NCBI GenBank assembly: GCA_038087875.1 | Contig: CM075985.1 | Location: 40,610,001 to 40,674,000, forward strand | Reading direction: 5' to 3' | Source: Malacoraja senta | Taxonomy: Eukaryota | DNA length: 64,000 nucleotides | In this document: positions 4,412 through 59,309 of the stretch, in pieces | Layout: every line of letters starts with the position of its first letter | How positions within the stretch are numbered: the first letter of the stretch is position 1 | Position numbers and translations under genes: made by a program | The notes under the pieces: model-generated | What the model was told of the DNA's origin: nothing | The model's input: the letters and a program-made list of their open reading frames with translations, nothing else | The model's database searches: none

Positions 4412-4585
4412 CTTCGATTTTCCAGCATCTGCAGTTCCTTCTTGAACAGTGACAAGTAGAGTTCTGCAGGGATCTGTCCTGTGACACTTGCTACTTGTGA
4501 CATATATAAATGACTTGGGTCTTGATGTTCAGAAATTACCCCAGTCATAACAATTAATCAAATAATGATTTTGTTTTTCTTTCAG

Positions 4586-4860
4586 AATATCACTATGTTC
4601 AAGGACAGTTTGGTTGTGAGGTGAACGATCACAGTCCCACTGTAGGGATATTGAAGTTGGCTTTTGACGGAAGATATGCATTTAGTTTTGATAAGGACAA
4701 ACTAAAGTGGACAGTGCATGATCCAATAGCTGAGACCTCCAAAGAGAAATGGGACAAGAATGAAAAAATGAACCGTTATTTCAAGAGCTTGTTAGAAATG
4801 ACTGTGTGGCTCTATGGGATACATACTATGCAATTGGAAAGACATACCTGACCAGAAAAG
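4586..4860 (+). CDS. MHC class I-like heavy chain, alpha2 exon (1-nt frameshift at about 4796-4799)
   Basis: ttttctttcag acceptor and gtgag donor, phase 1/1. Reads YHYVQGQFGCEVNDHSPTVGILKLAFDGRYAFSFDKDKLKWTVHDPIAETSKEKWDKNEKMNRYFKSLLE, then after a frame shift DCVALWDTYYAIGKTYLTRK. Both alpha2 cysteines and the AFDG, SFDK and KW motifs are present. Length is 275 nt, one short of 276. Confidence 0.9.
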
Positions 4861-5157: not shown

Positions 5158-6200
5158 GTAGGTATGTTACAAAACTTACCTTCAGCGGCGCTGCAGACCT
5201 GTCACTGGCCGTGTGCGCGACTTTGGCGCCTTTGAGGGGGGGCGGGGTTAAAATGCGGTTTTCTCCTGCCTGCCGGAGTTTTATTTTCTCGGGGTGCGGC
5301 TAATGCTGAGGAATTGTTCCGACTGCCGGTCTGTGAATAATGTTTTAAACATCGCTGGACAATTTCAGCGCTGGAGTAAAATAAAAATCCGCTTCTAATG
5401 CCGTGAACGCCGATAAGCGGGACGCATCTCACGTACGGGACACCTAAAGGTAAGCCCTTTATTTTACATATAAACGTGCTGCTTAGGATGACCTTAATCC
5501 AAATTTTACGTTGCGAAAAGGTGATTTAGGCCCCATACAAACCGGCAGTGTTTTTCCTGCCGATATGGGGTTCAAATTCACCGCAAATGCAACGTTCCAA
5601 TCGATCGCGTTACACAAAATCCCACTCGCAAGATGATTTAAATAGCCATTAATTTACGGGATTTAAACGCTAAATTCCTTCCATTTGGCGTATAAATTCA
5701 TGACAATAAGATTAAAAATTATGTTATATTGTGAATCCTTGTGTGAATGTTATTTGGACACTTAGGGTATTTAAAAATGTTAATCTTTTCTTAAGGAATG
5801 GATAGATGTTTAGATCTAGTAATTGAATTTTGTAATTAGCTACAAAATTCGGTAACTATCTAATTATATGCTTTAATTTCAGGTCATCCAAGTAAGATTG
5901 GTTCATATTTGTTTCAGAATGCTTCAATCTAGAATAACTGAAAATGTATTTCAGTTCTCATAATTTTTGAGAAAGTTATAGGCTTTTCACTGTCCTCGAT
6001 CACAGCTTTTGTGTTCAGTCAATGGAAAAGCAATAGGGAACAAAATGCTAATTTCCGAGTATTTAAATGGCCATACATTTTTTAATACTTAAGGTATGAA
6101 AGTGAATTAGATGTCAAATTGAACTTCTTTTTATGCTTTATCTGATGGGATAAATTGCAGACTTGATTTTTAAAATCTCAAAATGTTGTAAGATTGCTAC
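5158..6200. mobile_element. Non-autonomous DNA transposon with imperfect TIRs (possibly hAT)
   Basis: Left end gtaggtatgttacaaaactt vs reverse complement of right end gtagcaatcttacaacattt (15/20 match); flanked by ATGGA on both sides; no ORF. Confidence 0.65.
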
Positions 6201-9200
6201 ATGGAAGAAGCCAACTGAGTCATAAGGTCAGAAGTGATGGGTGCAGCATTAGAACATTCGGCCCATCAAGTCTACTTCGCGATTCATTCATGGCTGATCT
6301 ATTTTCCCTCCTAACCCCATTTTCCTGCCTTCTCCCCATAACCCCTGACGTGCATGCTAATCAAGAATCTATCTATGCCTTAAAAATATTCATTGACGTA
6401 CTCCAAAGCCTTCTATGGCTAACAATTCCACAGATTCACCACCCTCTGACTAAATAAATTCCTCCTCAACTCCTTCCTAAAGGATTGTCCTTTAATATTG
6501 TGACTATGACCTCTAGTCATAGACTCTCCCACCATTGGAGACATCCTCTCCACATCCACTCTATCCAAACCTTTTCACTATTTGGTATGATTCAATGAGG
6601 TCCCCCCTTATTCTTCTAAACTCTAAACGCCGTCAAATGGGCATCATATGTTAACCCATTCATTCCTGGGATCATTCTTGTACACCTCCTCTGGACCCTC
6701 TCCAGAGCCAGCACATCCTTCCTCAGATATGGTTCCCCAAATTGCTCACAATGCTCCAAATGTGCATTGACTGGCACCTCAGCATTACATCCCTGTCTGA
6801 CAGGGAGAAAGTGTCATTGATGTCTTTCATATTACTTAACCATGGATTTTCTTAACCACAGTTGACAGCCCCTAATGGGATTGCATGTCTATCACACATC
6901 TCTATAGAGCAGAGCGTTAAGCTTCGAAGGGCAACATTTACACGAGTTGTGCAGGCAAGTGTTTTTTTTGCGCAAAGAGAGTTTGATACCTAGAATGTGC
7001 TACCAGGAGTGGTGGTAGAGGAAGACATGATAATGGTGCTTAAGAATGTTTTGGACAGGCTTGTGGATATGCAGAGAGAATGTACAAACTCCGTCCAGAC
7101 AGCACTCTAGTCAGGATCGAACCCGGGTCTCTAATGCTGGAAGACAGCCACTCTATCGCTGTGCCACTGTGTTGCCTTAGTTTAACTTGGTATCCTCTTT
7201 GACATGGACATTGCAGGCTGAAAGTCCTGTTCTTGTGCTGTACTGTTCTATGTTCTACATATTCTCATTGGACAGGGCAGGGATACGTTTTCCACTCCTC
7301 CAGTCTCCATGTTGAGTACTTCCTCCCAGTTTAAATCTGATTCAATTAGTCAATCCATTTCTCCCTCCCCTCTTCCTGCCCTGCTCCCCATTCTATATTT
7401 TGAAGTAGTCATTCCCTTTTTCGCTCCCTGGTCTGCTCTACTATCCCCACAAATGTCCTCTACTTTACTATCTTGGTGCATGCAACATCTATCCATTTAC
7501 CTCTTCCCTTCCCACTGTCCATAGACCCAGGCAGTTCTTCAAAGTGAAACGGCGTGAAACACTTGCACTTCCAGTCAAATCTACTGCATTCGTTTTTCAT
7601 GACGTAATCTTCCACATTGCATCAATGAAACAAATTGAGTGGCTGCTTTCTGGAGAACCTGCATTCAATCCATGGGACCTTCTAAGATTCCTAATTCCTG
7701 CCACTTTAATTCTCCATTCAACCCACCATGATCCATCCATCTGTATCTCTTACACTAGGATAACAAGGGTGAAAGTAACCTTGAGGACCAACAACCCAGC
7801 TTCTGCCTGGATATGTTGCAGCCTTTCAAACTCAATTTCACATTCAACGAGTTGCATTCCCTGTCGATAAAAGAACTGGTCCTTTCAACTGTTAAGTTGA
7901 AGTCAGAAAGAACTGATACAAGAAGTATGAAGAAGGATTCAAAGCTGAAACATTACGTAACCATGCCTTGCAGATGCTGCCTGAGCCACTGAGTTACACC
8001 TGCACGTTTTTGTGGAGGGTTTTAATTACAGTTAAGTTACCTACCTGCAAAATCAGAACAGCGTGACCTACTTGAGTACTGCATTATGTGCTGCATTTTA
8101 TTTAACCCTGTTTAGTTTCATGCATGCAAAGATGCAGTGAAATGGTTTGGATGGAACAGCAGATGCTGGACACCCCATCCCCATCGCACCCCAGAGATGC
8201 TGCCTGTCCCGCTGAGTTACTCCAGCATTTTGTGTCTATCTGCTTTGAAATGGTTGTTCTGCATGCTCTCCAGTCAAGTCATACTGTACATCAGTTCAAT
8301 TCGTCCTCTTCTGGAACAGCTCGCAGAGATCCACCACATTCCAGGACTATCTTGCAGCTTCCAAGTCTCTGAAAAGTCTGATTTTGCCCCAAGGAAATAC
8401 CCAATTTCTCATTTTCTCATGTCAAGGACCAATGTCATAACAGCACTGGATTGATGAAGTAGTGGCGCCTGCCTCAGTTTACAAAATCCACCTGCCACAA
8501 AATCCCACTCGCAAGATGATTTTAATAGCCATTAATTTACGGGAATTAAACGCTAAATTCCTTCCATTTTGCGTATAAATTCATGACAATAAGATTAAAA
8601 ATCATGTTATATTGTGAATTCTTGTGTGAATGTTATTTGGACACTTAGGCTATTTAAAAATGTTAATCTTTTCTTAAGGAATGGATAGATGTTTAGATCT
8701 AGTAATTGAATTTTGTAATTAGCTACAAAATTCGGTAACTATCTAATTATATGCTTTAATTTCAGGTCATCCAAGTAAGATTGGTTCATATTTGTTTCAG
8801 AATGCTTCAATCTAGAATAACTGAAAATGTATTTCAGTTCTCATTATTTTTAAGAAAGTTATAGGCTTTTCACTGTCCTCGATCACAGCTTTTGTGTTCA
8901 GTCAATGGAAAAGCAATAGGGAACAAAATGCTAATTTCCGAGTATGTAAATGGCCATACATTTTTTAATACTTAAGATATGAAAGTGAATTAGATGTCAA
9001 ATTGAACTTCTTTTTATGCTTTATCTGATGGGATAAATTGCAGACTTGATTTTTAAAATCTCAAAATTTTGTAAGATTGCTACATGGAAGAAGCCAACTG
9101 AGTCATAAGGTCAGAAGTGATGGTGCAGCATTAGAACATTCGGCCCATCAAGTCTACTTCGCGATTCATTCATGGCTGATCTATCTTTCCCTCCTAACCC

Positions 9201-11363
9201 CATTCTCCTGCCTTCTCCCCCTAACCCCTGTCGTGCATGCTAATCAAGAATCTATCTATGCCTTAAAAATATCCATTGACGTACTCCAAAGCCTTCTGTG
9301 GCAAACCATTCCACAGATTCACCACCCTCTGACTAAATAAACTCCTCCTCAACTCCTTCCTAAAGGATTGTCCTTTAATATTGTGACTATGACCTCTAGT
9401 CATAGACTCTCCCACCATTGGAGACATCCTCTCCACATCCACTCTATCCAAACCTTTTCACTATTTGGTATGGTTCAATGAGGTTCCCCCTTATTCTTCT
9501 AAACTCTAAACGCCGTCAAATGGGCATCATATGTTAACCCATTCATTCCTGGGATCATTCTTGTACACCTCCTCTGGACCCTCTCCAGAGCCAGCACATC
9601 CTTCCTCAGATATGGTTCCCCAAATTGCTCACAATGCTCCAAATGTGCAATGACTGGCACCTCAGCATTACATCCCTGTCTGACAGGGAGAAAGTGTCAT
9701 TGATGTCTTTCATATTACTTAACCATGGATTTTCTTAACCACAGTTGACAGCCCCTAATGGGATTGCATGTCTATCACACATCTCTATAGAGCACAGCGT
9801 TAAGCTTCGAAGGGCAACATTTACACGAGTTGTGCAGGCAAGTGTTTTTTTTGCACAGAGAGAGGTTGATGCCTGGAATGTGCTACCAGGAGTGGTGGTA
9901 GAGGAAGACATGATAATGGTGCTTAAGAATGTTTTGGACAGGCTTGTGGATATGCAGAGAGAATGTACAAACTCCGTCCAGACAGCACTCTAGTCAGGAT
10001 CGAACCCGGGTCTCTAATGCTGGAAGACAGCCACTCTATCACTGTGCCACTGTGTTGCCTTAGTTTAACTTGGTATCCTCTTTGACATGGACATTGCAGG
10101 CTGAAAGTCCTGTTCTTGTGCTGTACTGTTCTATGTTCTATATATTCTCATTGGACAGGGCAGGGATACGTTTTCCACTCCTCCAGCCTCCATGTTGAGT
10201 ACTTCCTCCCAGTTTAAATCTGATTCAATTAGTCAATCCATTTCTCCCTCCCCTCCTCCTGCCCTGCTCCCCATTCTATATTTTGAAGTAGTCATTCCCT
10301 TTTTCGCTCCCTGGTCTGCTCTACTATCCCCACAAATGTACTCTACTTTACTATCTTGGTGCATGCAACATCTATCCATTTACCTCTTCCCGTCCCACTG
10401 TCCATAGACCCAGGCAGTTCTTCAAAGTGAAACGGCGTGAAACACTTGCACTTCCAGTCAAATCAACTGCATTTGGTTTTCATGACGTAATCTTCCACAT
10501 TGCATCAATGAAACAAATTGAGTGGCTGCTTTCTGGAGAACCTGCATTCAATCCATGGGACTTCCTAAGATTCCTAATTCCTGCCACTTTAATTCTCCAT
10601 TCAACCCACCATGATCCATCCATCTGTATCTCTTACACTAGGATAACAAGGGTGAAAGTAACCCTGAGGACCAACAACCCAGCTTCTGTCTGGACATGTT
10701 GCAGCCTTTCAAACTCAATTTCACATTCAACGAGTTGCATTCCCTGTCGATAAAAGAACTGGTCCTTTCAACTGTTAAGTTGAAGTCAGAAAGAACTGAT
10801 ACAAGAAGAATGAAGAATGATTCCAAGCTGAAACATTACGTAACCATGCCTTGCAGATGCTGCCTGAGCCACTGAGTTACACCTGCACGTTTTTGTGGGC
10901 GGTTTTAATTACAGTTAAGTTACCTACCTGCAAAATCAGAACAGCGTGACCTACTTGAGTACTGCATTATGTGCTGCATTTTATTTAACCCTGTTTAGTT
11001 TCATGCATGCAAAGATGCAGTGAAATGGTTTGGATGGAACAGCAGATGCTGGACACCCCATCCCCATCGCACCGCAGAGATGCTGCCTGTCCCGCTGAGT
11101 TACTCCAGCTTTTAGTGTCTATCTGCTTTGAAATGGTTGTTCTGCATGCTCTCCAGTCAAGTCATACTGTACATAAGTTCAATTCGTCCTCTTCTGGAAC
11201 AGCTCGCAGAGGTCCACCACATTCCAGGACTATCTTGCAGCTTCCAAGTCTCTGAAAAGTCTGATTTTGCCCCAAGGAAATACCCAATTTCTCATTTTCT
11301 TATGTCAAGGACCAATGTCATAACAGCACTGGATTGATGAAGTAGTGGCGCCTGCCTCAGTTT
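5614..11363 (+). repeat. Tandem duplication, 2,883-bp period (5614-8480 and 8497-11363, 16-nt filler 8481-8496)
   Basis: Constant offset of 2883 at both ends and at paired ORF-track entries (6194/9077, 7309/10192, 7544/10427, 8124/11007); scattered substitutions between copies. Confidence 0.95.
6280..6790 (-). mobile_element. CR1 LINE, degraded 3' fragment (duplicated at about 9163-9673)
   Basis: Minus strand reads like a CR1 RT C-terminus/3' end (MDRVDVERMSPMVGESMTRGHSHNIKGQSFRKELRRSLFSQRVVNLWNGLP in the duplicate copy). Confidence 0.75.
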
Positions 11364-12105: not shown

Positions 12106-13409
12106 CATGTACTGAGGTACAGTGTAAAGCTTTGTTTTGCATGCTATTCAATTGGATGCGATGACAACATACATATATATGATCAAGTCAAACTCAAGTA
12201 CTGTAGGTAGGGCAAAGGGGAAGGTACAGATTGCAGAATATAGTTCTCAGCAATGCAGCACACCAATTCCATTAGATAAGGGTTTTGACACGAAACGTGA
12301 CACATTCCTTCTCTCCAGAGATGCTGCCTAACCCGTTGAGTTACTCTAGCATTTTGTGTCTATCTGAGGTTTAAACCAGCATCTACAGTTCCTTCCTACA
12401 TAGTTCCATAAACAAAGTCCACTGTCTGTAATTGGGTAGTGGTCAATTGGGCAGTACCCTAGCTTATGGAACGATCATTCAGAAGCCTGATTTTCTCCTT
12501 GGTTATCAAGTATCCGAGTAACTAATTTGGTCCTCAAACCTGCCCACCATTCAATATGACCATGGCTGACGTTCCTCAGGCATCAACTCCTGTTCGGTGT
12601 CAGTTCCTCGTTGCACTCAATTCTCAATCTTTCAAAAGATTAACTACCGCCACATTAACTACTTCCAATGATTTTGTCTTCACAAATCTCTGGGGTCGAG
12701 CATGCCAGAAAATGACCACACTCTGCAAAAATAGATTTTGTAAATAAATGACTGGTCCCTTTTATCTCGTATTGAAGAGGAGTGGAAATACGGCCAATTT
12801 TCAGATTTTCCCCTCCGCTAATTGGCCCTCATTTCGTAACTTGTCAATTATTTATTATTGTCAATAATATGTCGTAGTGAAAGGATTTGGCGTTGGTATT
12901 AGTTTATTATTGTCACGTGAACTGTGATATAGTCTAAAGTTTGTCTGTGTGTTATCCAGTCAGATCATACTACACATGTGCAATCAAGCCATCCACAAGT
13001 AGAACAGTGCAAAGAGAACAATATTCAGAGTGCAGAATTAGAATATCATAGCATTACAGTTACAGAGAAAGCGCAGATCAAAAAGAGTTGCAAGGATCAC
13101 AATGAGATTGGTTGGAAGATCAGGACAACACCTTATCTTAAATGAGAATCATTCAGTAGTCCAATAACAGTGGGGAAGAAGCTGATTCTGAATTTAATGG
13201 TACGTGCTTTCAAACTTCCTTGTGTACTGTCTTAACAGGGAGCATACGATCCCTTTTAAACCACGTGGTTGGTTGATGGTGACGAAAGAGGCAAAATGGG
13301 GTAGATGTAGACAGTAACCTGGTTGTTGTTGTAGACTGAAGAATATTTTGTGGTGGGTGACTGTGCAAGTTTTACTGAAGATGAAAATAACCATCTTCCT
13401 GTCTTGTAG

Positions 13410-13676
13410 TTTCCCCTGAGGTCACTCTCACTGCCCGCCCTGATGATCATTCAGTCCTGTACTGCACTGTATTTGGATTTTACCCACCGGCCATCAATGT
13501 CAGCTGGTTGCAGAATGGTCAACATGTCTCTGAGACCAAATCTTCTGGGGTCATACCCAACAACGATGGAACATATCATCTAAAGTCTGTCCTTGAGTAT
13601 GATCCGTATGATGGGAAACAGTATTCCTGTCATGTCGATCACAGCAGCCTGCCAGGTGGGAAGACCATCATCTGGG
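13410..13676 (+). CDS. MHC class I-like heavy chain, alpha3 (Ig C1-set) exon
   Basis: cttcctgtcttgtag acceptor and gtaag donor, 267 nt, phase 1/1. VSPEVTLTARPDDHSVLYCTVFGFYPPAINVSWLQNGQHVSETKSSGVIPNNDGTYHLKSVLEYDPYDGKQYSCHVDHSSLPGGKTIIW, with C1-set motifs LxC..GFYP..W, PNxDGTY and YSCHVxHSSL. Confidence 0.95.
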
Positions 13677-14217
13677 GTAAGAACGTTAAATATTCTTTCG
13701 TAGATAATCATTATCTTCTGTTGTTTCCATTTTAATCATTGTGACTACATCCCATATTCCAAGATGCTTAAACTTTCTTTGTTTAGTGGTGTTGCTCTAA
13801 GCAATCACGTAATCAGCACCCACTCTCCACATGAGCAGAAGACTTTGTCAACAGTAAATTTATCAAAAGTAAATATATAACTAATATACAAGGAAGGAGT
13901 ATTTCGGATTCTCAGTGGTGGAACTGAAATCCATGAAAGGTATATATAAATAAAAAATGAATCTTTCCTCATGATGTGATTAACAGCAAGGCACTGGGGG
14001 AGTACATGCCCCCAATCCGAATCAATGGTTTGAAGTGGAAATTATTGTGAGCTTCATGTTCCTTGGCATGAATATATCCAATATTCTGTCATGGACTGAC
14101 CACATAGCTAAGGAGGCACACCGACACATCTACTTCCTCAGGAGACTGAGAAAACTCATCATGTCTCTGGCGACTCTTGCAAATATCTATATATGCCGCT
14201 AGAGAAAGCATGTTGTT

Positions 14218-14784: not shown

Positions 14785-16909
14785 GAGAAAGCATGTTGTT
14801 GGGTTGCATCACATCTTGATTTGGGAACTGCACTGCCCAAGACTGCAAGAATATACAAAGAGTTAAAGATCATCACACAGGCCAGACTTCCCACTATTGA
14901 CTCAATCTACACCAGGTTGCCTTGGTACACCCCGGTCATTCCTCCTTCCTGCTCCCATCAGGCAATTGGTGCAAAAAGTTGAAAATATGCACTGCCAGAC
15001 TCAGGAACACCCCTTTTCCATCTGTTATCAGGCTTCGGAAGGGTCCTTCCATAATGTAGGTTTAATGCCCGATTCACCTCTACCTCATTGCACATTGAAC
15101 TGATGTGTTACAATGCTGAGAACAATATTCTGTACTTTGTATCCTCCTCTTTGCTCTATCTATTGTTTTTGAGTTTGTATTTATGTATAGTCTTATCTAA
15201 TTTGTTTCTATAGCATGCAAAACAACCTTTGCACTGTATCTTGAAACATCTGGCATTAATAAAACTAAACCTAATGAAGTAAGTTCCGCAAGTTACAGTT
15301 TCTGCAATGAAAAATATAACTGCTTGACAAACAGCGATCGTACTAGTTTGATTCCAGGTATGCTGCACTAACCTTCGTAAGTGCTCACTTTTGAAGATTC
15401 CCTCGAACAATGCACAACTAAGGAATCTGATGTTTCACTGTGAAGACTGATGACATACTCCAGAACTTAATTTCCAACCTATCTATGTATCATCAGCAAT
15501 CTAGGCTACAGCACCGTCAGTCCCTTCATCTGCTCTTAATACCAACGATAAGTAGTTTATTTCTTGCATTGATTCCCAACCTGCAGTTGCAGTTTCCCCA
15601 ACCTGAACACTCCTTTAAGACAACTCTCTGCTTGCTCTTAATTGTTTTTCCATTCATGCTAATTATTACCCCAAATGTCATAAGCCATGTGCCTTTGCAT
15701 CGCTTGATCAGATATCTTATGAAAATCCAGATATTGTGGCGACATATGGTGGTCAGGCCACTTATTGCTAGAACCCTCGTCAGGGGAGCTGGGACTATCA
15801 CGTGACAGGGTTTTGGTGGGAGTTGGTGACGAGTCAGTCGCCAGTCAACTGGTTTGCCCGATTGCGGCAGGAACTTTGCTCAAGTCCTTACTAAACGCGC
15901 GTGTGTGCCAAAACTATATTTCTTTTAAAAAAAAAGATTTGTTGATGACGTTTGGATCTCTACAATATATTGTATTTCTTTTGTTTCTCATTCCAATTTT
16001 GTTACCTATTCTGCTTTTCCATCATTTTGTTTTTGAATTTTAGGCTTTTCACACCTGCAAACTACTGCTGCTTGAATATACACTGTCTACGGGTTCCTGT
16101 TGCATTTTCAAAGAATTCTAATCAATTTCTCAAACAAAGTTTGAACAAGGGCCCCAAAACGAAACCCAAGATGGACACACATTGCTGAAATCATTCAGCT
16201 GGTCAGGCAGCATCTCTGGAGAAAAGGAATAGGTGATGTTTCGGGTCACGCTCCTTCTGACTGAGTCCATGCTCACCAGAGATGCTGCCTGCCCCGCTGA
16301 GTTACTCCAGCATTTTGTGTCTATCATGTATATCCTTTCCACTCACTGGTTAGCACATAACAAAACCTTTTTCACTGTAACTCAGTACACATGACAATAA
16401 AATAAACTGAAGCTTTTGTGTAAATCAATATCCGCATCTCTTTATTTCTACAATGTTCCTGTTAATGCCTTGTTAATGCACTTTATTGTTCTGTTATTAA
16501 TAAAATGTTCTGCCATTACTGAAGGAAATCCAGCATTTTCCCCCAAACAGATGTTAGATTATATAGGGTTAAAGCTTTCTGCTTTCAATTCGTCTTCTTT
16601 CATGAATTAAGCTGTGGCTGTCATGGTGCCATAGATCATAGAGTTGTACAGAACATATATTGTCCCTTTGCCATGCTGCAGAACTCCGTGATTCAAAACA
16701 CCACATCATTTTATATACCTTGAAAAGTGCCAAAGACAGACACAAAATGCTGGAGTAACTCAGCGGTTAGGTAACATCTCTGGAGAAAAGGAATAGATGG
16801 CATTTCGGGTCGAGACACTTCTTCACCCTGAAGTCTTCAGACAGTGCCAATCCATTTAGCTGCACAGCTTAACAATTGATTTGTAAAATTATGCATTCTT
16901 ATTTTTCAG

Positions 16910-17017
16910 AAGGAAATAGGAAGAAAGACAAGCACATTGGCCTTATTGCCGTGTGTGTGCTGATATTGCTGGCTATTGTCTTGGCAGTAATTGTTTGGTG
17001 GAGAAAAAAGAGGAGAG
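16910..17017 (+). CDS. MHC class I-like heavy chain, connecting peptide/transmembrane exon
   Basis: ttcttatttttcag acceptor and gtaag donor, 108 nt, phase 1/1; (E)GNRKKDKHIGLIAVCVLILLAIVLAVIVWWRKKRR is a hydrophobic span followed by a basic stop-transfer. Confidence 0.85.
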
Positions 17018-17254
17018 GTAAGATGGAAAAATCGTGATGCACATTTGCTAATAAAGGTATTGAAGAAATGATTGATCTCAAGTAGGATAACGCAGCAGCT
17101 ACACTTGAAATGCCTTGGCAGTCACCACTGTCAACTAGCCGTTGTGCTGTTGTTAAATGTTTCTGATAATCAGATATTTGAAAATTGTGAATTCCTTGTA
17201 AAAAGAAAAGTTTAACATTATGGATTCACTGCACCAAATCATAGAAATATAATT

Positions 17255-17950
17255 GAGTCATTGAAAAGTACAGCATGGAAGCAGTCCTTTCGGCCCATCG
17301 AGTCCATGCCAACCACCTGTTCTCGTGAATTATATCTCATTGCACCTTCTCATCCAGTCACCCACCCACTAGGGGCAATTTACAGTGGCCAATTAAACTA
17401 TAAACGGACACATTTTTGGGATGTGTAAGGAAGCCGGAGCCCCTGGAGGGATCCAATGCAGTTACACGGAGAACGTGCAAACTCCACATTGATGGCACAA
17501 GAGGTCAAAATTGAACCCGGGTCTGTGTCGCTACGAGGCAGCAGCTCTACCAGTTATGACACTGTGCTGCTCTGTTGGGGGCTCGCACTGTTTATGATCC
17601 GTCAGCTACGAGGCAGATTGGTTGCAGTTTAACATTTACTAGTTTTGTTTAGTTTAATTTAGAGATACAGTGACGAAACAGGCCCTTCGGCCCATCGAGT
17701 CTGTGCTGACCAGCGATCCCCGCACATTAACACTATCCTATACACACACACACACCAAGCCAATTAACCTACATACCTGTACGTCTTTGGAGTGTGGAAG
17801 GAAACCTTATATCTCGGAGAAAACCCACGCAGGTCACGGGGGAAACGTACAAACTCTGTACAGACAGCATCAGTAGTCGGGATCGAACCCGGGTCTCCGG
17901 TGCTGCAAGGGCTGTAAGGCAGCAACTCTACCGCTGTGGCACCATGGTCG
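17255..17950 (-). mobile_element. Two adjacent tRNA-derived SINE copies (about 17255-17575 and 17650-17950)
   Basis: Both are reverse complements of the SINE family seen at 1632-1908. Confidence 0.75.
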
Positions 17951-18814
17951 CCACTGAGGCCACAGTTACTGGAAGTCTCAAAATTAAGTAGTGGTAGGAA
18001 AAATGGTTCAAGGTGGAATGAATGAGCAACAACATGACAGGTGGACTGCAATGTTAAAGGGCAGCGCGGAGCCAGAGACCTGAATTAAATTCCAACATCT
18101 GTGGAGTTTGCATGTTGTTCCTGTGGCCAAGTGGTTTCCCCAGGTGCTCTGGTTTTCTGCCACATCGCCAAAACATGGTTTGGTAAGTTAGTTGTCCCCT
18201 AGATTGTGCATGATACAATGTGGGGAGAGCTGATGAGAATGTGGGACAAATGTAGGATTAGTGTACATGAATGGTTGGTGCAGATCAGTGGGACAAAGGC
18301 CATGTTTGTATATTTCCATGACTCTTTATGATGTAGAAAGATGCTGACTATTTTTGAATTATAAGATTGGAAAAGACTGTGAGGGACGGTGCTAGAGTAA
18401 CTCAGCAAGTCAGGCAACATATAGGTGACATTCTGGTTCGAGACTCTTCAGGCAAATTAAAACGGTTATTCCTCCGCTTAAGTCTGATAGTAGTGTGCAG
18501 TTGCACCTCAACAACTGACTTGCTCAACAAGTGCCCCAATGAGTTGAATTAAAGTATGTTTGGAGTAACATGCAGCAGTCCTTAAAATCTACAATTTCCC
18601 AAATCCCAAGAGAGCTGGATGATCAGGGATTTGGTGTAAATTCAAAGTCATCTATATCACTGGTTTCTTGCCTGTGATCACACTGTTGTAAGAGATATTT
18701 TAGCGATGAATTGCAGTTCACTTTACCCCTGTGTAAAGGAGTTATTGAGATAAATATTGCATCATAACAAGTGGAAGGGAAAGGCAATGTAGGATTTAGA
18801 GTTTGTACGTAGTG

Positions 18815-19110
18815 CAGCATGGTAGTGCAGCTGGTAGAACTGCTGCCTCACAACGCCAGAGACCCAGGTTCAATCTGGACCTCGGGTACTGTCTACGTGG
18901 AGTTTGCACGTTCTCCTTGTGACTATGTCGGCTTCCTCAGGGAGCTCCGGTTTCCTCCCATATCACATAGATGAGCGTGTTTGTAGGTAATCAGCCTCAG
19001 TAAATCACCCTGACAGTGCAGGGAGTGGATGGGAATCTATTAAGAATAGGCGATTGCTGGTTAGTATGGATTTGGTGGCACAAATGGACTGTTTACACAC
19101 TGTATCACTG
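18815..19110 (+). mobile_element. tRNA-derived SINE
   Basis: gcagcatggtagtgcagctggtagaactgctgcc...cccaggttcaatc head plus the central block. Confidence 0.7.
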
Positions 19111-20656
19111 TTTTCAAGAGAGAGTTAGATTTAGTTCTTAGGGCTAAAGAGATCAAGGGATATGGGGAAAAAGTCGGAACGTAGTACTGATTTTGGATGA
19201 TTAGCCATGATTGTATTGAATGGTGGTGCTGGCTCGAAGGGCTGAATAGCCTATTCCTGCACATATTTTTTTACGTTTCTATCTTTCTATTAAATAAGCT
19301 AAATTGGAAGTCAGAAGGTATTGACTGATGCATCTTCAAGCCAGCTGTAAATGTCATAAATTGTGAGAATTGATTGCAAATGTGATACAATATTATAAAC
19401 AAAACTTGGTGATCAAAATGACAAGATGGATGAAGAGCAGAGTTTTCTTTGAAATAACAGATGTGCTGCTTTTCTCGAGCACTTGGCCTTGGTTGTACAA
19501 TATTTCCCTTTCAAAATACAATGTTCACAGGCACTGCTGGTCTGAGACACCACTCAGCAAGTATATTTCCTGAAACGGTGGTTCTGCTTTCATGGTATCA
19601 AGATGTCTAGCAGCTCGAGCACCCAGATCAACCAACCAAGATGCCATGTTGAAACTAGTCCCCTTTTCCCTGCAATTGACCCATATCTCACTGAACCATT
19701 CCTATCTACAGTATGTACCTGTCCAAGTGTGTTCTAAATGTGTTTTAAGTCCCTGCCTCAACTACTTCCCCTCGAATGTTGTTCCATATTTCCACTTCTT
19801 CTGGTTTCGAGTAACTAATTTTCCTTCAACTTAAATCTAAGTCCTCTGTTTCTTGCTTACACAAGGCTGGTTAAAATATTCTGTGCATTCAATCTATCTA
19901 TGCTCCTTGATTTTATAAACCTCTATAAGATCACCCCTCAGCCTCTTGAATGCCAAGGAATAAAGTCCAAGCATTCTCATCCTCTCCCTGAATCACAGGC
20001 CCTGTTAATGACATCCTTCCAATAGTGGAGCGACCAAAACTTAACACAATACTCCAAATGTGGCCTCACCAACATCTTGTACAACTGTAGCAGAACATCC
20101 CAACTTTTTTATCCAGTACCTTGACGGCCAGAGAAGGTTGTGCTGTGAGGAGGAAATGTCATGTTATTGATGTTCCTGATTATTCTGTTCTATGTGCCGG
20201 GCCATTTTGACTTTGCCCCATTTTACTTTGTGTATGATATTGTACAAGATTTGTAATCACACCTCCCAATTGACTAAAATTATCTTAATTAACTAAATGC
20301 CTAATATGTTATAAGGCCCAATTAGGCATTTAGTTCAGTAGGATAATTTTCTGTGGCGGGTAGAAGATGCAGTTTTTATTACACACTATGTGGTGTGTGC
20401 CTGGAATGTACTGCCAGGGATGGTGGCGTTTGGGGTGCAGCTTCGTGGATGCAGGGGCTGAAGGGACATGAATCATTTGCAGGCAGGTGCTGCCTAACTG
20501 GTGTCTGTCCGACTGATTGGGAAGCATTTGAATGGGCTCTGATCGTCAGGCATTGAATACTTCCAGTGACACTATTATGCTGATTTCCCAGAAGATTACG
20601 ATGGCAGAACAGGTCCTTCGGCCACCAATGTTTGTGCTGAATATGATGAAAATTAA

Positions 20657-21170
20657 GGCAGAGTGGCGCAGCAGAGAGAGCTGCTGCCTCAGAGCGTCAG
20701 AGACATGGGTTCAATCCTAACCTCGGTTGTTGGCTGTGTGAAGTTTGTATATTTTCCCTGTGACCGCATGTGTTTCCACTGTGCTCCAGTTTCCACACAC
20801 ATACCAAAGATGCCAGGGTTTATGGGTTAATTGTCTCTGTAATTTAACCCTAGTGTGGATGCGAAAGTTGGATAACATAGAACTTGTGTGAAAGAAACTA
20901 ATTGGAGGAATATTATGTTTTTTGTTTAGTTTAGTTCAGAGACATAGCGTTGAAACAGACACTTCAGCCCACTGAGTGTGGACCAACCAATGATCACCCA
21001 CGCATGCTAGGGACACAAGACAATTAACCTACAAACCTGCATGTCTCTTTTTGTAATGTGGGAGGAAACTGGAGCACCTGGCGAAAACCTGTGCAGTCAC
21101 AGCGAGAAGGTACAAACTCCGTAGAGACAGGACCCGTAGACAGGATCAACCCAGATGTCTGGTGCTGTGC
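20657..21170. mobile_element. Two SINE copies in opposite orientation (about 20657-20890 on +, 20925-21170 on -)
   Basis: Head ggcagagtggcgcagcagagagagctgctgcc on +; reverse-complement copy follows. Confidence 0.65.
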
Positions 21171-21328
21171 CATTATATCTGGAAGGAAGATGTTATGTGG
21201 AATAAATCATCAGTTGAAGCAAATAAACTAGTTGCATCATTTTGAGCTCTGTCCTCTGCGAATGGACTACTGCATCTTTTGTCTATTTTCTATTTCACAG
21301 TTGTCTAATATTTAATTTCCCTCCTCAG

Positions 21329-21369
21329 ATTATAAAACTATTCAACCAAACCAGAACGTGCACTGCTAA
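21329..21369 (+). CDS. MHC class I-like heavy chain, probable terminal cytoplasmic exon
   Basis: aatttccctcctcag acceptor, phase 1 compatible with the TM exon; (D)YKTIQPNQNVHC then TAA at 21367-21369. The exon is short, so the assignment rests on splice phase, acceptor quality and the YxxPhi motif. Confidence 0.65.
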
Positions 21370-24300
21370 CCTATCGCTGAATAGAAGATTTCATGGATGT
21401 GATTGAAATGCAGGATCTGAAATATATCGAAAGAGTTAAATTAAATTTACTAAACATGACAGTATTTCTTAATAGACTGTCCTGCATTTGTACACATTAA
21501 CGCTATGTTGCAATTTTTGCTGATCACAGCTGATCTGACTTAGGCCTCAACTCCTTTACTGTACTTCTTCCACATAGGATACAATCCCCTGTTATTTTAG
21601 AATATATCCTATTTATGTTTAAATATCTCCAATGTTCTAACCTCCTTGGTGTCAAAATGCAGCTCTGCAAAATGGTTGACCTGTCTATGCTATGTTCTCC
21701 AATGTAGAAGAGGCCACATTGTGTACACTGAATGCAGTGGACGTGGTTGGACGCGGTGCAGCTGAATATCTGTTTTCCATGGAACTGTCTTCTCCCTTTG
21801 TTTCCATTTTCCACCACACATTATCCATTAATTCACCACCCCATCATGCCTCTTTGATACCCTCATAAGGTTAACTCTGGTTTTCGTCAACTCCAAGGAA
21901 TACGGAGCCAACGATTTCAGCCATTCGTGGTAAGGCAACACTTGCTTATTCCAAGAATCTCTTCTAGCTGATATCCAATATTAATATATCCTTACTTAAA
22001 TCTGAGAACCAAACTGTACACAGTGCTTCTGATATATTCTTAGCAACATCATGTACCATAATTACAATAGTAACCTACTTTGAACGCCAATATGCTAATC
22101 ACCTGCTTTGTGTGCTGCATCTACCTGGCGGCTTTTTTTTGCACCTTAAGCACTTGAATCTCTTGCACTCTACTCATTTGCAATCTCACTCCATTTAGAT
22201 AATAGCTTCCTTTGAATCACTCTTATCAAAGTGTGCGAGCACATATTTTCCAGTATATTAAACTCCATTTGCCAGTTTTATGTTCATCTAACAAAGAGTC
22301 GTGGAGCCATATAGCATGGAAACAGGTACTTCAGCCCAATGCTCCAAGTTGAACAAGATGCTACATCAAAGTTTGTCGCATTTGCCAGCATGTGGCCCAC
22401 ATTCCTCTCAACATGTTCTATCGATGTACCTGTCCAAGTGCCTTTTCAATGTTGTTATTCTACCTTCTCTGTCAGCTCATTTCATACACCCAGTAACCTC
22501 TGAGTGGAAATGGATGCCTGTCAGATTCCTACTAAATCTTCCTCCTCACCTTAAACCTGTTTTTGCTGGTTCTTGATTACCCTACACTGGGTAAATGCAT
22601 TAGTGCATTCCCCTGATCTATCGCCCTCATGATTTTAGATAGCGCTATAAGATCACCAATTAAAAGGTTTCAATTATAGATAGTGAGATGTTGTGGTTAT
22701 TTCCATCAAGAATTATAGACTAAAGAAAGGCCAGTAGATGTACTTGGTCAAACAGAATCTGTGGAGGCAAATGGCAAAAACCAGCATTTCAAGTCAAGGC
22801 ACTGCCTTAGAATTGAAAGAGAGGATGGGACGATTCTAACAGTTTGAAGGAGGAATGGGGCAGAGGCTGGTAAGTGGCAGGTGAAATCTTTTGGGGGGGG
22901 GTGGGGATGATGGGCAGATGGAGCAAAGTTGATGTAGGGGTGGTTGTGGGAGAACAAATGAACACCAGTGGTGTCGATAAGCTGAAATGTGAAAACTTAA
23001 TATACCATGAAGCTACCCAGGTGGTATTTTGTTTACAATTTTCAGTGCACAAGGTGAACGACAGACGGGTCAATGTGAGAGTGGGAAGGGGTGTTAAAAT
23101 ACCACACAACAGATCTCACGATGATCTTTGTTTCAAAGCGTATGTGCTCTGCAAAATGGTTGACGTCTAAGCTAGTTTCTCCAAAGTAGAGGACAACAAT
23201 GTGAATGCTGAATGCAGTGGAGAAAGTTGAAAGAGGTGCAAGTGAGCCTCTGTCTCACTTGGAAAGTTTATACTCCTGTTGTTCACCTCTTCCTCCTCCT
23301 CTCCTACCTGTTTCCATCTACTCATTATCCTCTCCCCACTTGGTTCTATTTTTAAGCTACCAGCCTCTGTCCTATCCCTCCCTGATTGCTATATATTGGC
23401 AATCCATCCTCTTCCCTAACTGGTGCAGGTTATTGTCCCTATTTGTGACATAAACCACTTGTCCCAATAATTTTGCTTGAGCCATTAAATGCTTTCAGTC
23501 TTCTGTTTTTAGATGCCATTAGCTAGTCATTATTGGATAGAATGTATGTTGTTTCAACACTGCATTTAGTTTGAGACTCAGCACCAATAAATTTTGTTAC
23601 ATAATGCTAGGTTATTTGATGGTCAAATTCTTGATTGTCAGTACTTTAAAAATTTCTAATCTAATGCAAATAACTTATCCATAAGAATATAAAATTATCC
23701 ACAGTGACTGGTGGTACAGTGATCATGTTCATTTTATGTGGCTGGTCTGGCACAAGTGCTGCTCTTGAGATTTTGCCTGATAATAGTTGCCTGCAGAATG
23801 TGCCCGATGACTAGACCATTGCGTATAAGAATGTTTTTAATAGATGGGCAGTAAATCCAAGTAAACGCATTGCATTGCACCCTGTATGATAGTGGTTTCA
23901 TTTTGTAAAGTAAAGCCAAGATATGGTCAATTAATATGCAAGGGACACAATTAAATTGTTGTTAAGAAAATGTATTCCCTCCATTTATTTGCAACAGCAT
24001 CAATCACAGTTATCTTCCGTCAAAGTTGATTTTGTATTTTCTAAAGAAAGAATGGAACAAAATGATCAAAAATGAATTGGCAGTCAAAGTAATACAAGGT
24101 TGTAGTGAAGACAAGTGTGTAGGAACAGGCCACTCTGCCTATCCTGCCAATACTGGTGCATATGGTCCACATGAGCCTCTTCCCACCTTATGCGATCTGC
24201 AACATGGTTGGCAAGTCTATTCTGGATTCTCCAAAGTAGAACCGACTGTTCTTTTCTCTTTTGCATTTGCCCAGCCTTCCCCTAAATGCAATTAATTGAT

Positions 24301-55092: not shown

Positions 55093-56014
55093 CTGCACAA
55101 TCGCAATCCTACTTCAAAATCAGAGCGCAACGATCTACATCGTTCACCATCATGGACATAGCGTGAGAAATGGATCGGACCCGAAACATCACATTAGCAT
55201 GTTCTTCGGGGATGCTGCCTGACCCGCTGTCACTCCAGCATTTGTGTAAAATGGACTTGTTCTTTCCACTTGTGTTTTTCATTTTGAAGTATTTTCCCTT
55301 CTACTGAGTTGCAGAATCTATGTGTAATATGCACTACATGTATGAATTATGCGCATGTTTGTTTGTCTGAGTCTATATACCTGCGATGCTGCACGCAGGT
55401 ACCAATACCTCAATCAATTTGTGGAATACATTCGAACTGCCTGGACGGACATTGCGGCAGAATCGGATGTGACGTCATGTGCCCGATATTTTAAATTTCA
55501 AGTTAGTTTTAAATTTGCATAAACATCTAAACGTAAATCCATAGATTAACAGATTTTCATTGTACCCTAGGAATTAAAAATAAATCAATATGAATCTAAA
55601 CATTGTGTCCTGCAGATCTTGCAAAGAATGTGGAGAGTCAAGATGTGTGAAATCCAAGCAGGATATCTCGGTGCCGTCCTGCTCACTTCGGTGCAGTGTT
55701 TGATGCCCGCGGTCCATTTGAGTTGTTCGTCAATAGTGAGTCCAGATAGATGATGGCAATGGGATAAGCAAGCCTAACATCACCGAATATCAATGGAAGT
55801 TGGTTTGTTAAAACTCTTGTTGGAGATGCTTATGCCCTGGTTATTCTTGTAGTAATCTTGTAGTAAACACTGCTGAATGTGTTTGTTTTGGTGTGACTAA
55901 TTCCAAACATTAGGCAAAACGCACTGATCTCCGTCTCTTTTCCTGTTTAAATACGACCTTGGTTCGAAAGCTGAAGTGTTCTATGTTCACACCCCCGTCA
56001 AGAGCAGTTTATTC

Positions 56015-56081
56015 ATGCAGACTATGAGGCAGCCGGTCATCATACACATAGAGAATATCTACATTGGGCTTGGATTTCTTG
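56015..56081 (+). pseudogene. Candidate GPCR exon 1 (partner of 58412-59309), degraded
   Basis: MQTMRQPVIIHIENIYIGLGFL+G resembles exon 1 at 47656 (LIIRQIEEIYY..LIGIPG); no canonical GT donor at the expected position. Confidence 0.4.
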
Positions 56082-58411: not shown

Positions 58412-59309
58412 CTAATCTGATGGCGATCATGATTCTCCGCCGCAGAATTGCGGTCTATCGAAATGCATCACGCGTAATTTGGTCTACATGACAGCTGCCG
58501 ATCTAATGGTTCTGATATTTTAAGTGATTTTGTATGAGATAAAAGATGCCTATTGGCCATATTCATATCTCAATTATACTGCTGTTTGCAGCGTTAATCT
58601 CGCGCTGTTGTTTGTTTCTATTGATTGTTCGGTCTGGTTAACTCTGGCCTTCAAATTTGACCGACTTATAGCTATTAGTTGCCAGTCGCTGCGAACAAAA
58701 TACTGCACCAAAAAGATCGCGTCAATGGTCATTACAATTGTATGTTTTTTGAGCGTGCTGGAAAACATTCCGATCTTCTTTATTTATGATCCTCGGGAAA
58801 TACTTGATGGTCAGCCATGGTCATGTTATGTAAAGTCAAGCTTCTACACCGCCCCAATATGGATCGCATTTTTATGGTTGGACACTATTTTATGCTCATT
58901 TGCACCTTTCGTTTTGATCATGCCCCTTAATTCTCTGACCATCAGGCATATCGTACGGCTAGTAGTGAGGAGCGCTCTCCGAGGAACCAACTGGCCTACC
59001 AGTCACACAGATCCAGAAATTGATAACCGTAGGAAGTCAATCATATTATTGTTGGCAATTTCAGGCAATTTTATACTCCTATGGATGGTGCTTTTCATTT
59101 GTTATCTGTTTGTGCACTTTACCGACACTCAGTTTTTAGAAGCAAATTACAATGACCCTTTCACTATTGCGGAACAATCCGGATATATGCTGAGGTGCTT
59201 AACTGCTTGCACACATACTTTTATTTATGCAGTGTCTCAGGATAAATTCAGAGAGGAATTGAAGAATATAGTTAAGCGTCCACTAAGTATATTCACCAGT
59301 TTTAAATAA
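58412..59309 (+). pseudogene. Class A GPCR (GPR139/GPR142-like), exon 2, disabled
   Basis: tcttttcgcag acceptor; ANLMAIMIL, frameshift near 58440, NCGLSKCITRNLVYMTAADL, in-frame TAA at 58521-58523, then a 261-aa open stretch through FDRLIAI...RRKSIILLL...YNDPF...HTFIYAVSQDKFR. Confidence 0.85.

Follow-up and report, generated by a model that had tools for sequence, protein, structure and literature searches.

Positions 16910-21369 of a 64 000-nucleotide stretch of the genome of the skate Malacoraja senta (GenBank assembly GCA_038087875.1, contig CM075985.1, positions 40,610,001 to 40,674,000, forward strand; hereafter the window) contain the last two coding exons of a copy of UGA, a non-classical class I gene of the major histocompatibility complex (MHC) of elasmobranchs. 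The first exon encodes the transmembrane (TM) span and the second a short cytosolic tail with the tyrosine motif YKTI, of the YxxPhi type (Y-x-x-[LIMFV]). Comparison of this tail across sharks and rays, and with the tails of CD1 molecules, suggests that the motif probably routes the protein via the clathrin adaptors AP-2 and AP-3 to endosomes. A CD1-like sorting tail had been proposed from the letters of the stretch, without database searches (hereafter the sequence-only reading).

Terminal exons and splice junction

Joining 16910-17017 to 21329-21369 gave a product ending ...VIVWW-RKKRR-D-YKTI-QPNQNVHC, followed by the stop codon, which reproduced exactly, and with exact coordinates, the peptide WWRKKRRDYKTIQPNQNVHC of the sequence-only reading. 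The first exon, bounded by the acceptor ttttcag/AA and the donor AGAG/gtaaga, was translated in phase 1 as (E)GNRKKDKHIGLIAVCVLILLAIVLAVIVWWRKKRR plus a split G, comprising in order (E)GNRKKDKH, a 22-residue hydrophobic span, RKKRR and the split G, which is completed to GAT (D) across the acceptor cctcctcag/AT before 21329. The last exon consists of 41 coding bases, with a TAA stop at 21367-21369, and at least 2.3 kb of 3' untranslated region (UTR), as judged by an mRNA contig (L001) extending to window position 23693. The sequence YKTI conforms to Y-x-x-[LIMFV] and lies in the predicted cytosolic segment, after the hydrophobic span and RKKRR, its tyrosine being the seventh residue past ...VIVWW. 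If translated in frame, the product of the window copy would have the C-terminus DYKTIQPNQNVHC; the skate cytosolic tail is RKKRRDYKTIQPNQNVHC, and a shark counterpart is, for example, RRQRDYNTV.

The splice from 17017 to 21329 was found, with an identical junction, in mRNA contigs from three separate runs, L001 (SRR11241640, 3455 nt), L005 (SRR13269316, 1435 nt) and L006 (SRR13269358, 1992 nt), which were reached via the 90% cluster of a Leucoraja erinacea class I model (three 334-residue proteins). Each contains a single uninterrupted coding sequence of 1005 nt, indicating that they are spliced mRNAs. They aligned with the window in four blocks (4583-4860, 13408-13676, 16909-17017 and 21327 onward), with 93-95% identity in the coding exons and no gap across the 17017/21329 junction. 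An identical tail-exon acceptor and frame were present in the genomic loci of Rhinoraja (L002), Pristis (L003) and Stegostoma (L004). Both exons are genuine and end the coding sequence of this skate UGA copy.

A motif of this kind means little taken alone, since the chance of one Y-x-x-[LIMFV] in an 18-residue tail is about 1/10 at average residue frequencies, and the intron and downstream sequence hold many AG sites with pyrimidine tracts from which a wrong terminal exon might have been picked. Conservation lifts the motif above chance, however, and an accidental match or a wrongly chosen exon is scarcely tenable here and refuted for the family: the three mRNAs use exactly the 21329 exon, contrary to the possibility that transcripts end in a different one, the tail exon is common to gene models of 20 species, and the odd tail of Leucoraja 'isoform X5' matches sequence 35 kb farther downstream, in the 5' portion of a nearby G protein-coupled receptor (GPCR) gene. 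Other candidate terminal exons listed in the intron and downstream had no mRNA support. A second AG acceptor lies 28 nt upstream of the one used (window 21296-21309, cacag/TTGTCTAA); its use would give a tail ...RRVV and stop, with loss of the tyrosine. The equivalent AG-TTGTCTAA context occurs in Rhinoraja too, and this acceptor was unused in the three mRNAs.

Assignment to the UGA lineage

The window contains one class I gene, which is accepted as a copy of UGA. Its alpha2 and alpha3 domains were nearer to PDB entry 9CH4 and to annotated orthologues than to other class I sequences: alpha2 matched chain 9ch4_A with an E value of 2.2e-25 (next chain 8.5e-10) and alpha3 matched it far ahead of other chains (Table 1), and 9ch4_A aligned over the whole ectodomain with the whale-shark orthologue (E 4e-177). 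We infer from PMC12562908 that 9CH4 is UGA, the PDB title reading just 'Ig-like domain-containing protein'. The closest database protein was a class I model of the little skate (L. erinacea); identity in alpha2 to the three best matches (Leucoraja and two Pristiophorus models) was 93%, 75% and 71%, and to all other class I 36-45%. The order of a TM exon followed by a single short exon for tail and 3' UTR was likewise found in the window. The gene is multi-copy in skates, with at least nine models on one Rhinoraja chromosome.

A 2025 review citing a personal communication describes UGA as CD1-like and lipid-binding, on the basis of a crystal structure and mass spectrometry, and this statement is the sole source for a hydrophobic lipid-binding groove in UGA (PMC12562908). 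The lineage is thus already named and already called CD1-like, and the window adds one more, possibly dead, copy. In a Pfam search of three UGA proteins, MHC_I scored 75-88 bits (cut-off 28.3). The model MHC_I_3, which we take to be the CD1-type one, reached 19.5 and 25.4 bits in two of them, below its cut-off of 35, and did not match the third. No CD1 chain was among the 60 best PDB matches, in which 9ch4 was followed by MR1 and classical class I. As judged by these profiles, UGA is MHC_I and not CD1. The CD1-like interpretation of the tail appears largely right for the gene family, but membership of the CD1 family is not supported by sequence.

A sister class I-like lineage (P0016, P0211-P0221) shares a 127-kb Leucoraja scaffold with the UGA model P0154 and gave weak MHC_I_3 matches; it may be UFA.

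Conservation of the tail across sharks and rays

Tails were taken from canonical isoforms of 20 shark and ray species, to which the window added a 21st sequence. Four columns of the 50-column alignment of stalk, TM span and tail were invariant, the tail tyrosine (21/21) among them, and the residue at Y+3 was Ile or Val in 20 of the 21 sequences, namely Ile in every ray and Val or Ile in every shark but the whale shark. Conservation of the motif among orthologues, the check suggested in the sequence-only reading, was borne out in 20 species. The positions between are free to vary (K, Q, E, N or S at Y+1; T, N, S, I, V, A, F or L at Y+2), and in this alignment Y and Phi are retained while the x positions vary, as would be expected if a YxxPhi signal were under constraint. 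Before the tyrosine stands D, A, G or E in every sequence, since the codon for this residue begins with the G contributed by the TM exon. The tyrosine is encoded by TAT in rays and by TAC in the zebra shark; the Ile codon remains ATT.

Among rays, the tail reads DYQNIQPNQNVPC in Leucoraja, DYQNIPPNQNVPC in Amblyraja, DYQTIQPNQN[MR]RC in the Rhinoraja paralogues (at least nine), AYENIRANQNLRC in the sawfish Pristis, DYESIRAHRRVNC in the stingrays Hemitrygon and Hypanus and DYENI[PR]AHRNVNC in two species of manta (Mobula). Shark proteins end in DYNIV in Heptranchias, Scyliorhinus canicula and Carcharodon, in GYNVI in the zebra shark (Stegostoma), in GYSLT in the whale shark, and elsewhere in DYNTV, DYNVV, DYSVV (two species), DYSFV, EYNAV or AYNAV. 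Sharks therefore stop at the motif (for example RRQR-DYNTV-COOH), and rays carry eight more residues with a conserved final Cys. The shark stop TAA (L004 around 44065-44080) aligns with CAA or CGA in skates and sawfish (window 21343-21369), and the ray extension looks like the result of a stop-codon change.

The TM cysteine and the C-terminal cysteine had been suggested as sites of palmitoylation or dimerization. Both are present, and their palmitoylation is possible; the terminal Cys is limited to rays, and the TM Cys occurs in rays and in some sharks only, so that neither is a family-wide requirement. Predicted isoforms of two shark models (P0201 and P0204) omit the 108-nt TM exon in frame, so that alpha3 runs directly into DYNTV or DYNVV; such a product would be soluble.

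Other elasmobranch class I tails differ. Those of the classical type (P0172, P0173 and P0176) are about 33 residues long, with GYNPT and a Ser-rich end, and those of the sister lineage (P0016, P0211-P0221) are long and Gln/Arg-rich; neither contains YxxPhi.

State of the copy in the window

The alpha2 exon of the window copy is one base short relative to the Leucoraja mRNA, with GAA-ATGAC in place of GAA-C-ATGAC in L001, and the Rhinoraja genes (..ENDC..) also have the extra base. At the gap the frame switches from ...NRYFKSLLE to NDCVALWDTYYAIGKTYLTRK and runs into the premature stop, so that the copy has no intact open reading frame (ORF). The splice sites of the copy are all undamaged, as are the exons for alpha3, the TM span and the tail. 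The window does not include the leader and alpha1 exons, and positions 1-411 of the homologous mRNA had no match in it.

These data suggest that the window copy either became a pseudogene recently or contains an error of assembly, and a full-length protein may not be made. Whether it is a pseudogene, with a tail exon left intact by recent damage and a motif that is idle at this locus, is an evenly balanced matter and compatible with an endosomal tail at the level of the family. The frameshift itself argues for a pseudogene, as do the multi-copy nature of UGA in skates, a tandem duplication in the alpha2-alpha3 intron of the window copy only, and the finding that each of the eight positions at which the TM and tail exons depart from the mRNA alters an amino acid. 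However, a single lesion was seen, the remaining exons and splice sites are undamaged, the ratio of nonsynonymous to synonymous substitution rates (dN/dS) against the expressed Leucoraja copy was 0.55 overall and 0.32 in alpha3, values that give no sign of prolonged neutral drift, and the missing base could be a mistake in the assembly.

The duplication is about 2.9 kb long (offset 2883; window 6167-8451 and 9050-11334), and it is specific to the window copy, because both halves map to one Rhinoraja segment (L002:30203-31083). Read-through of the alpha3 donor (window 13677-13735) would add W-GKNVKYSFVDNHYLLLFPF before a stop. The same W-GKNVKYSFVDNHYLLLFPF ending occurs in two annotated skate models (P0154 and P0163); these may be soluble products of intron retention, or predictions that were cut short.

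Proposed trafficking of UGA and alternative explanations

The best reading of the UGA tail appears to be a CD1-like endosomal route through AP-2 and AP-3, because the tyrosine and Phi residues are conserved, the ending is of the CD1 type and the motif is absent from classical and sister-lineage tails. The tyrosine and the Ile or Val would bind the mu subunits of clathrin adaptors, whereby AP-2 would take UGA in from the cell surface. AP-3 would probably carry it on to late endosomes and lysosomes, the site of lipid exchange by CD1b, CD1c and CD1d; this step is suggested by the closeness of the motif to the membrane and to the C-terminus, by its Ile and by the acidic residues that flank it. With a membrane distance of seven residues, a terminal position and acidic neighbours, the motif fits signals of the lysosomal type. 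The proposal of an endosome-sampling class I molecule is supported in part, as regards the tail exon, the position of the motif behind a basic stop-transfer, the conservation of the motif and the description of UGA as CD1-like and lipid-binding (PMC12562908), and has to be qualified in that the gene is class I, not CD1, by sequence.

Several points weigh against this interpretation. In the whale shark the Phi position is taken by Thr (GYSLT). Different endings are found in some predicted isoforms and paralogues (Heptranchias X2, Chiloscyllium X1/X2, Rhincodon X1, Pristis b/c and the Pristiophorus models). No localisation, internalisation or adaptor-binding data on UGA proteins were found in the literature consulted. 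At the window locus the interpretation is weakened by the alpha2 frameshift, with the leader and alpha1 exons lying outside the window; for the gene family it holds despite that gap.

The conserved tyrosine might instead be the old class I tail tyrosine (Y320 in mammals, GYNPT in sharks), serving recycling or cross-presentation trafficking or phosphorylation and not CD1-style lysosomal lipid sampling. Classical elasmobranch tails likewise have G-Y-N a few residues past the anchor, shark UGA tails read G/D-Y-N, UGA is MHC_I by sequence, and a single conserved MHC-I tail tyrosine is reported to affect endolysosomal trafficking in mice (PMC12518231). We regard this explanation as unlikely, since classical tails have Thr or Ala at Y+3, which is not bulky, and continue for about 20 residues, whereas UGA keeps Ile or Val there and ends at once or within eight residues, the pattern of CD1 and LAMP; even so, the old class I tyrosine would still imply endosomal trafficking.

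Less probable still is a localisation of UGA, in endosomes or at the surface, that is independent of the tail, with the motif kept for another partner, for example by PDZ-type or C-terminal recognition in sharks. The endings DYSVV and DYSFV also fit the generally known S-x-V C-terminal pattern, but DYNIV, DYNTV and EYNAV, like most shark tails, do not fit S/T-x-V, and the ray motif is internal, its Y and I nonetheless being invariant. In Atlantic cod, mutation of hypothetical tail signals of MHC I left trafficking unaffected (PMC9905690), which favours tail-independent localisation and counts against an endosomal signal in the UGA tail. A PDZ ligand was rejected on inspection of the tails, most of which do not fit S/T-x-V, as was an immunoreceptor tyrosine-based inhibitory motif (ITIM), the residue at Y-2 being Arg or Lys.

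More tentatively, the UGA tail may function as an AP-2/AP-3 signal by which a lipid-binding, class I-like protein of sharks and rays reaches late endosomes; CD1-style endosomal sampling of lipids, with its tail and six-exon layout, would then predate the split between cartilaginous and bony vertebrates, and the Cys extension of rays may add a control by lipid modification. This wider scenario is possible, at somewhat less than an even chance. If the signal works like that of CD1, jawed vertebrates would have had from the outset the cell-biological side of lipid antigen presentation, namely endosomal routing by a tail tyrosine, and the relationship between UGA and CD1 would become directly testable with simple tail mutants.

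Features of the window

The features of the UGA copy are listed in Table 1. Two intronless ORFs for GPR139-like receptors are also present, at 58443-59306 (+) and 37085-36218 (-), that on the + strand sharing 86.5% identity with protein P0156 of L. erinacea. The end of Leucoraja 'isoform X5' was rejected as an alternative UGA tail, as it maps to window 55970-56062 (+), beside a GPR139-like gene, indicating that Leucoraja isoforms X1-X5 are read-through chimeras of UGA and the GPCR. A low-complexity stretch rich in Pro and Gly (28700-29800) has long ORFs on both strands and lies near N runs at 28316-28617 and 30312-30466.

Table 1. Coordinates of the UGA exons and tail features in the window
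Feature	Positions	Strand	Remarks
Alpha2 exon	4586..4860	+	275 nt, not a multiple of 3; base missing between 4797/4798; premature TGA 4849-4851
Alpha3 (C1-set Ig) exon	13410..13676	+	267 nt, intact; PDB 9ch4_A E 3.6e-35
TM exon	16910..17017	+	connecting peptide, span IGLIAVCVLILLAIVLAVIVWW, basic stop-transfer RKKRR, terminal split G; mRNA blocks 94-95% identity
TM cysteine codon TGT	16954..16956	+	kept in all rays sampled, variable among sharks
Intron, TM exon to tail exon	17018..21328	+	4311 nt, gt...ag; without any internal mRNA block
Last exon, coding part	21329..21369	+	(D)YKTIQPNQNVHC + TAA stop
YxxPhi motif Y-K-T-I (TAT AAA ACT ATT)	21331..21342	+	Tyr 21/21, position 4 I/V 20/21
C-terminal cysteine codon TGC	21364..21366	+	kept in all 8 ray species; not in sharks
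3' UTR	21370..23693	+	exon shared with tail coding part; L001 1064-3455 against window 21327-23693, 86% identity

Comparison with known systems

The window copy differs from other UGA genes in the alpha2 frameshift and in having K and T at the two free positions of the motif. Atlantic cod MHC I is comparable to UGA as a fish class I molecule with predicted tail motifs and endolysosomal residence, but its tail motifs are not conserved in the way the UGA tyrosine is. With classical class I molecules (the Y320 type and shark UAA-like GYNPT) UGA shares a single conserved tyrosine a few residues into the tail; unlike UGA, these have tails of about 33 residues with a Ser-rich end and no bulky residue at Y+3.

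Lysosomal signals such as GYQTI of LAMP-1, GYEQF of LAMP-2 and GYEVM of CD63 place a C-terminal YxxPhi 6-9 residues from the membrane. The UGA tail has the same arrangement, with its tyrosine seventh and with shark tails ending at Phi. Skate YQTI is identical to the YQTI of LAMP-1, and the Gly-Tyr start recurs in zebra-shark GYNVI. These proteins are unrelated to UGA, however, and the resemblance of the tails is a lead only.

The closest parallel is with CD1. Tails confirmed by cDNA include RRRSYQNIP of human CD1b, RRWSYQTIL of bovine CD1b5, KKHCSYQDIL of human CD1c and RRRSAYQDIR of mouse CD1d (PMC5002277, Table 2), and the architecture of CD1b, CD1c and CD1d proposed for the window, YxxPhi a few residues past a basic stop-transfer, agrees with these. 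Genes of CD1 and MR1 comprise six exons, the last holding both tail and 3' UTR, and YXXZ drives recycling of CD1 to intermediate and late endosomes (PMC5002277); binding of AP-3 to the tail of mouse CD1d depends on the tyrosine (PMC2194227). Like CD1b, CD1c and CD1d, UGA has a short tail on its own last exon with the 3' UTR, and shark UGA tails end right at the motif; the six-exon layout is that of CD1 and MR1, and a basic stop-transfer is followed by Y-x-x-I/V at or near the C-terminus (RKKRKDYQTI... in skates, RRQRDYNTV in sharks). UGA departs from CD1 in the sequence of its ectodomain, which is not of the CD1 type, in having D, A, G or E instead of S before the tyrosine, as imposed by the split G-codon, in lacking a dileucine overlap and, in rays, in eight extra residues ending in Cys. 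In its tail and gene layout, UGA is of the same kind as CD1.

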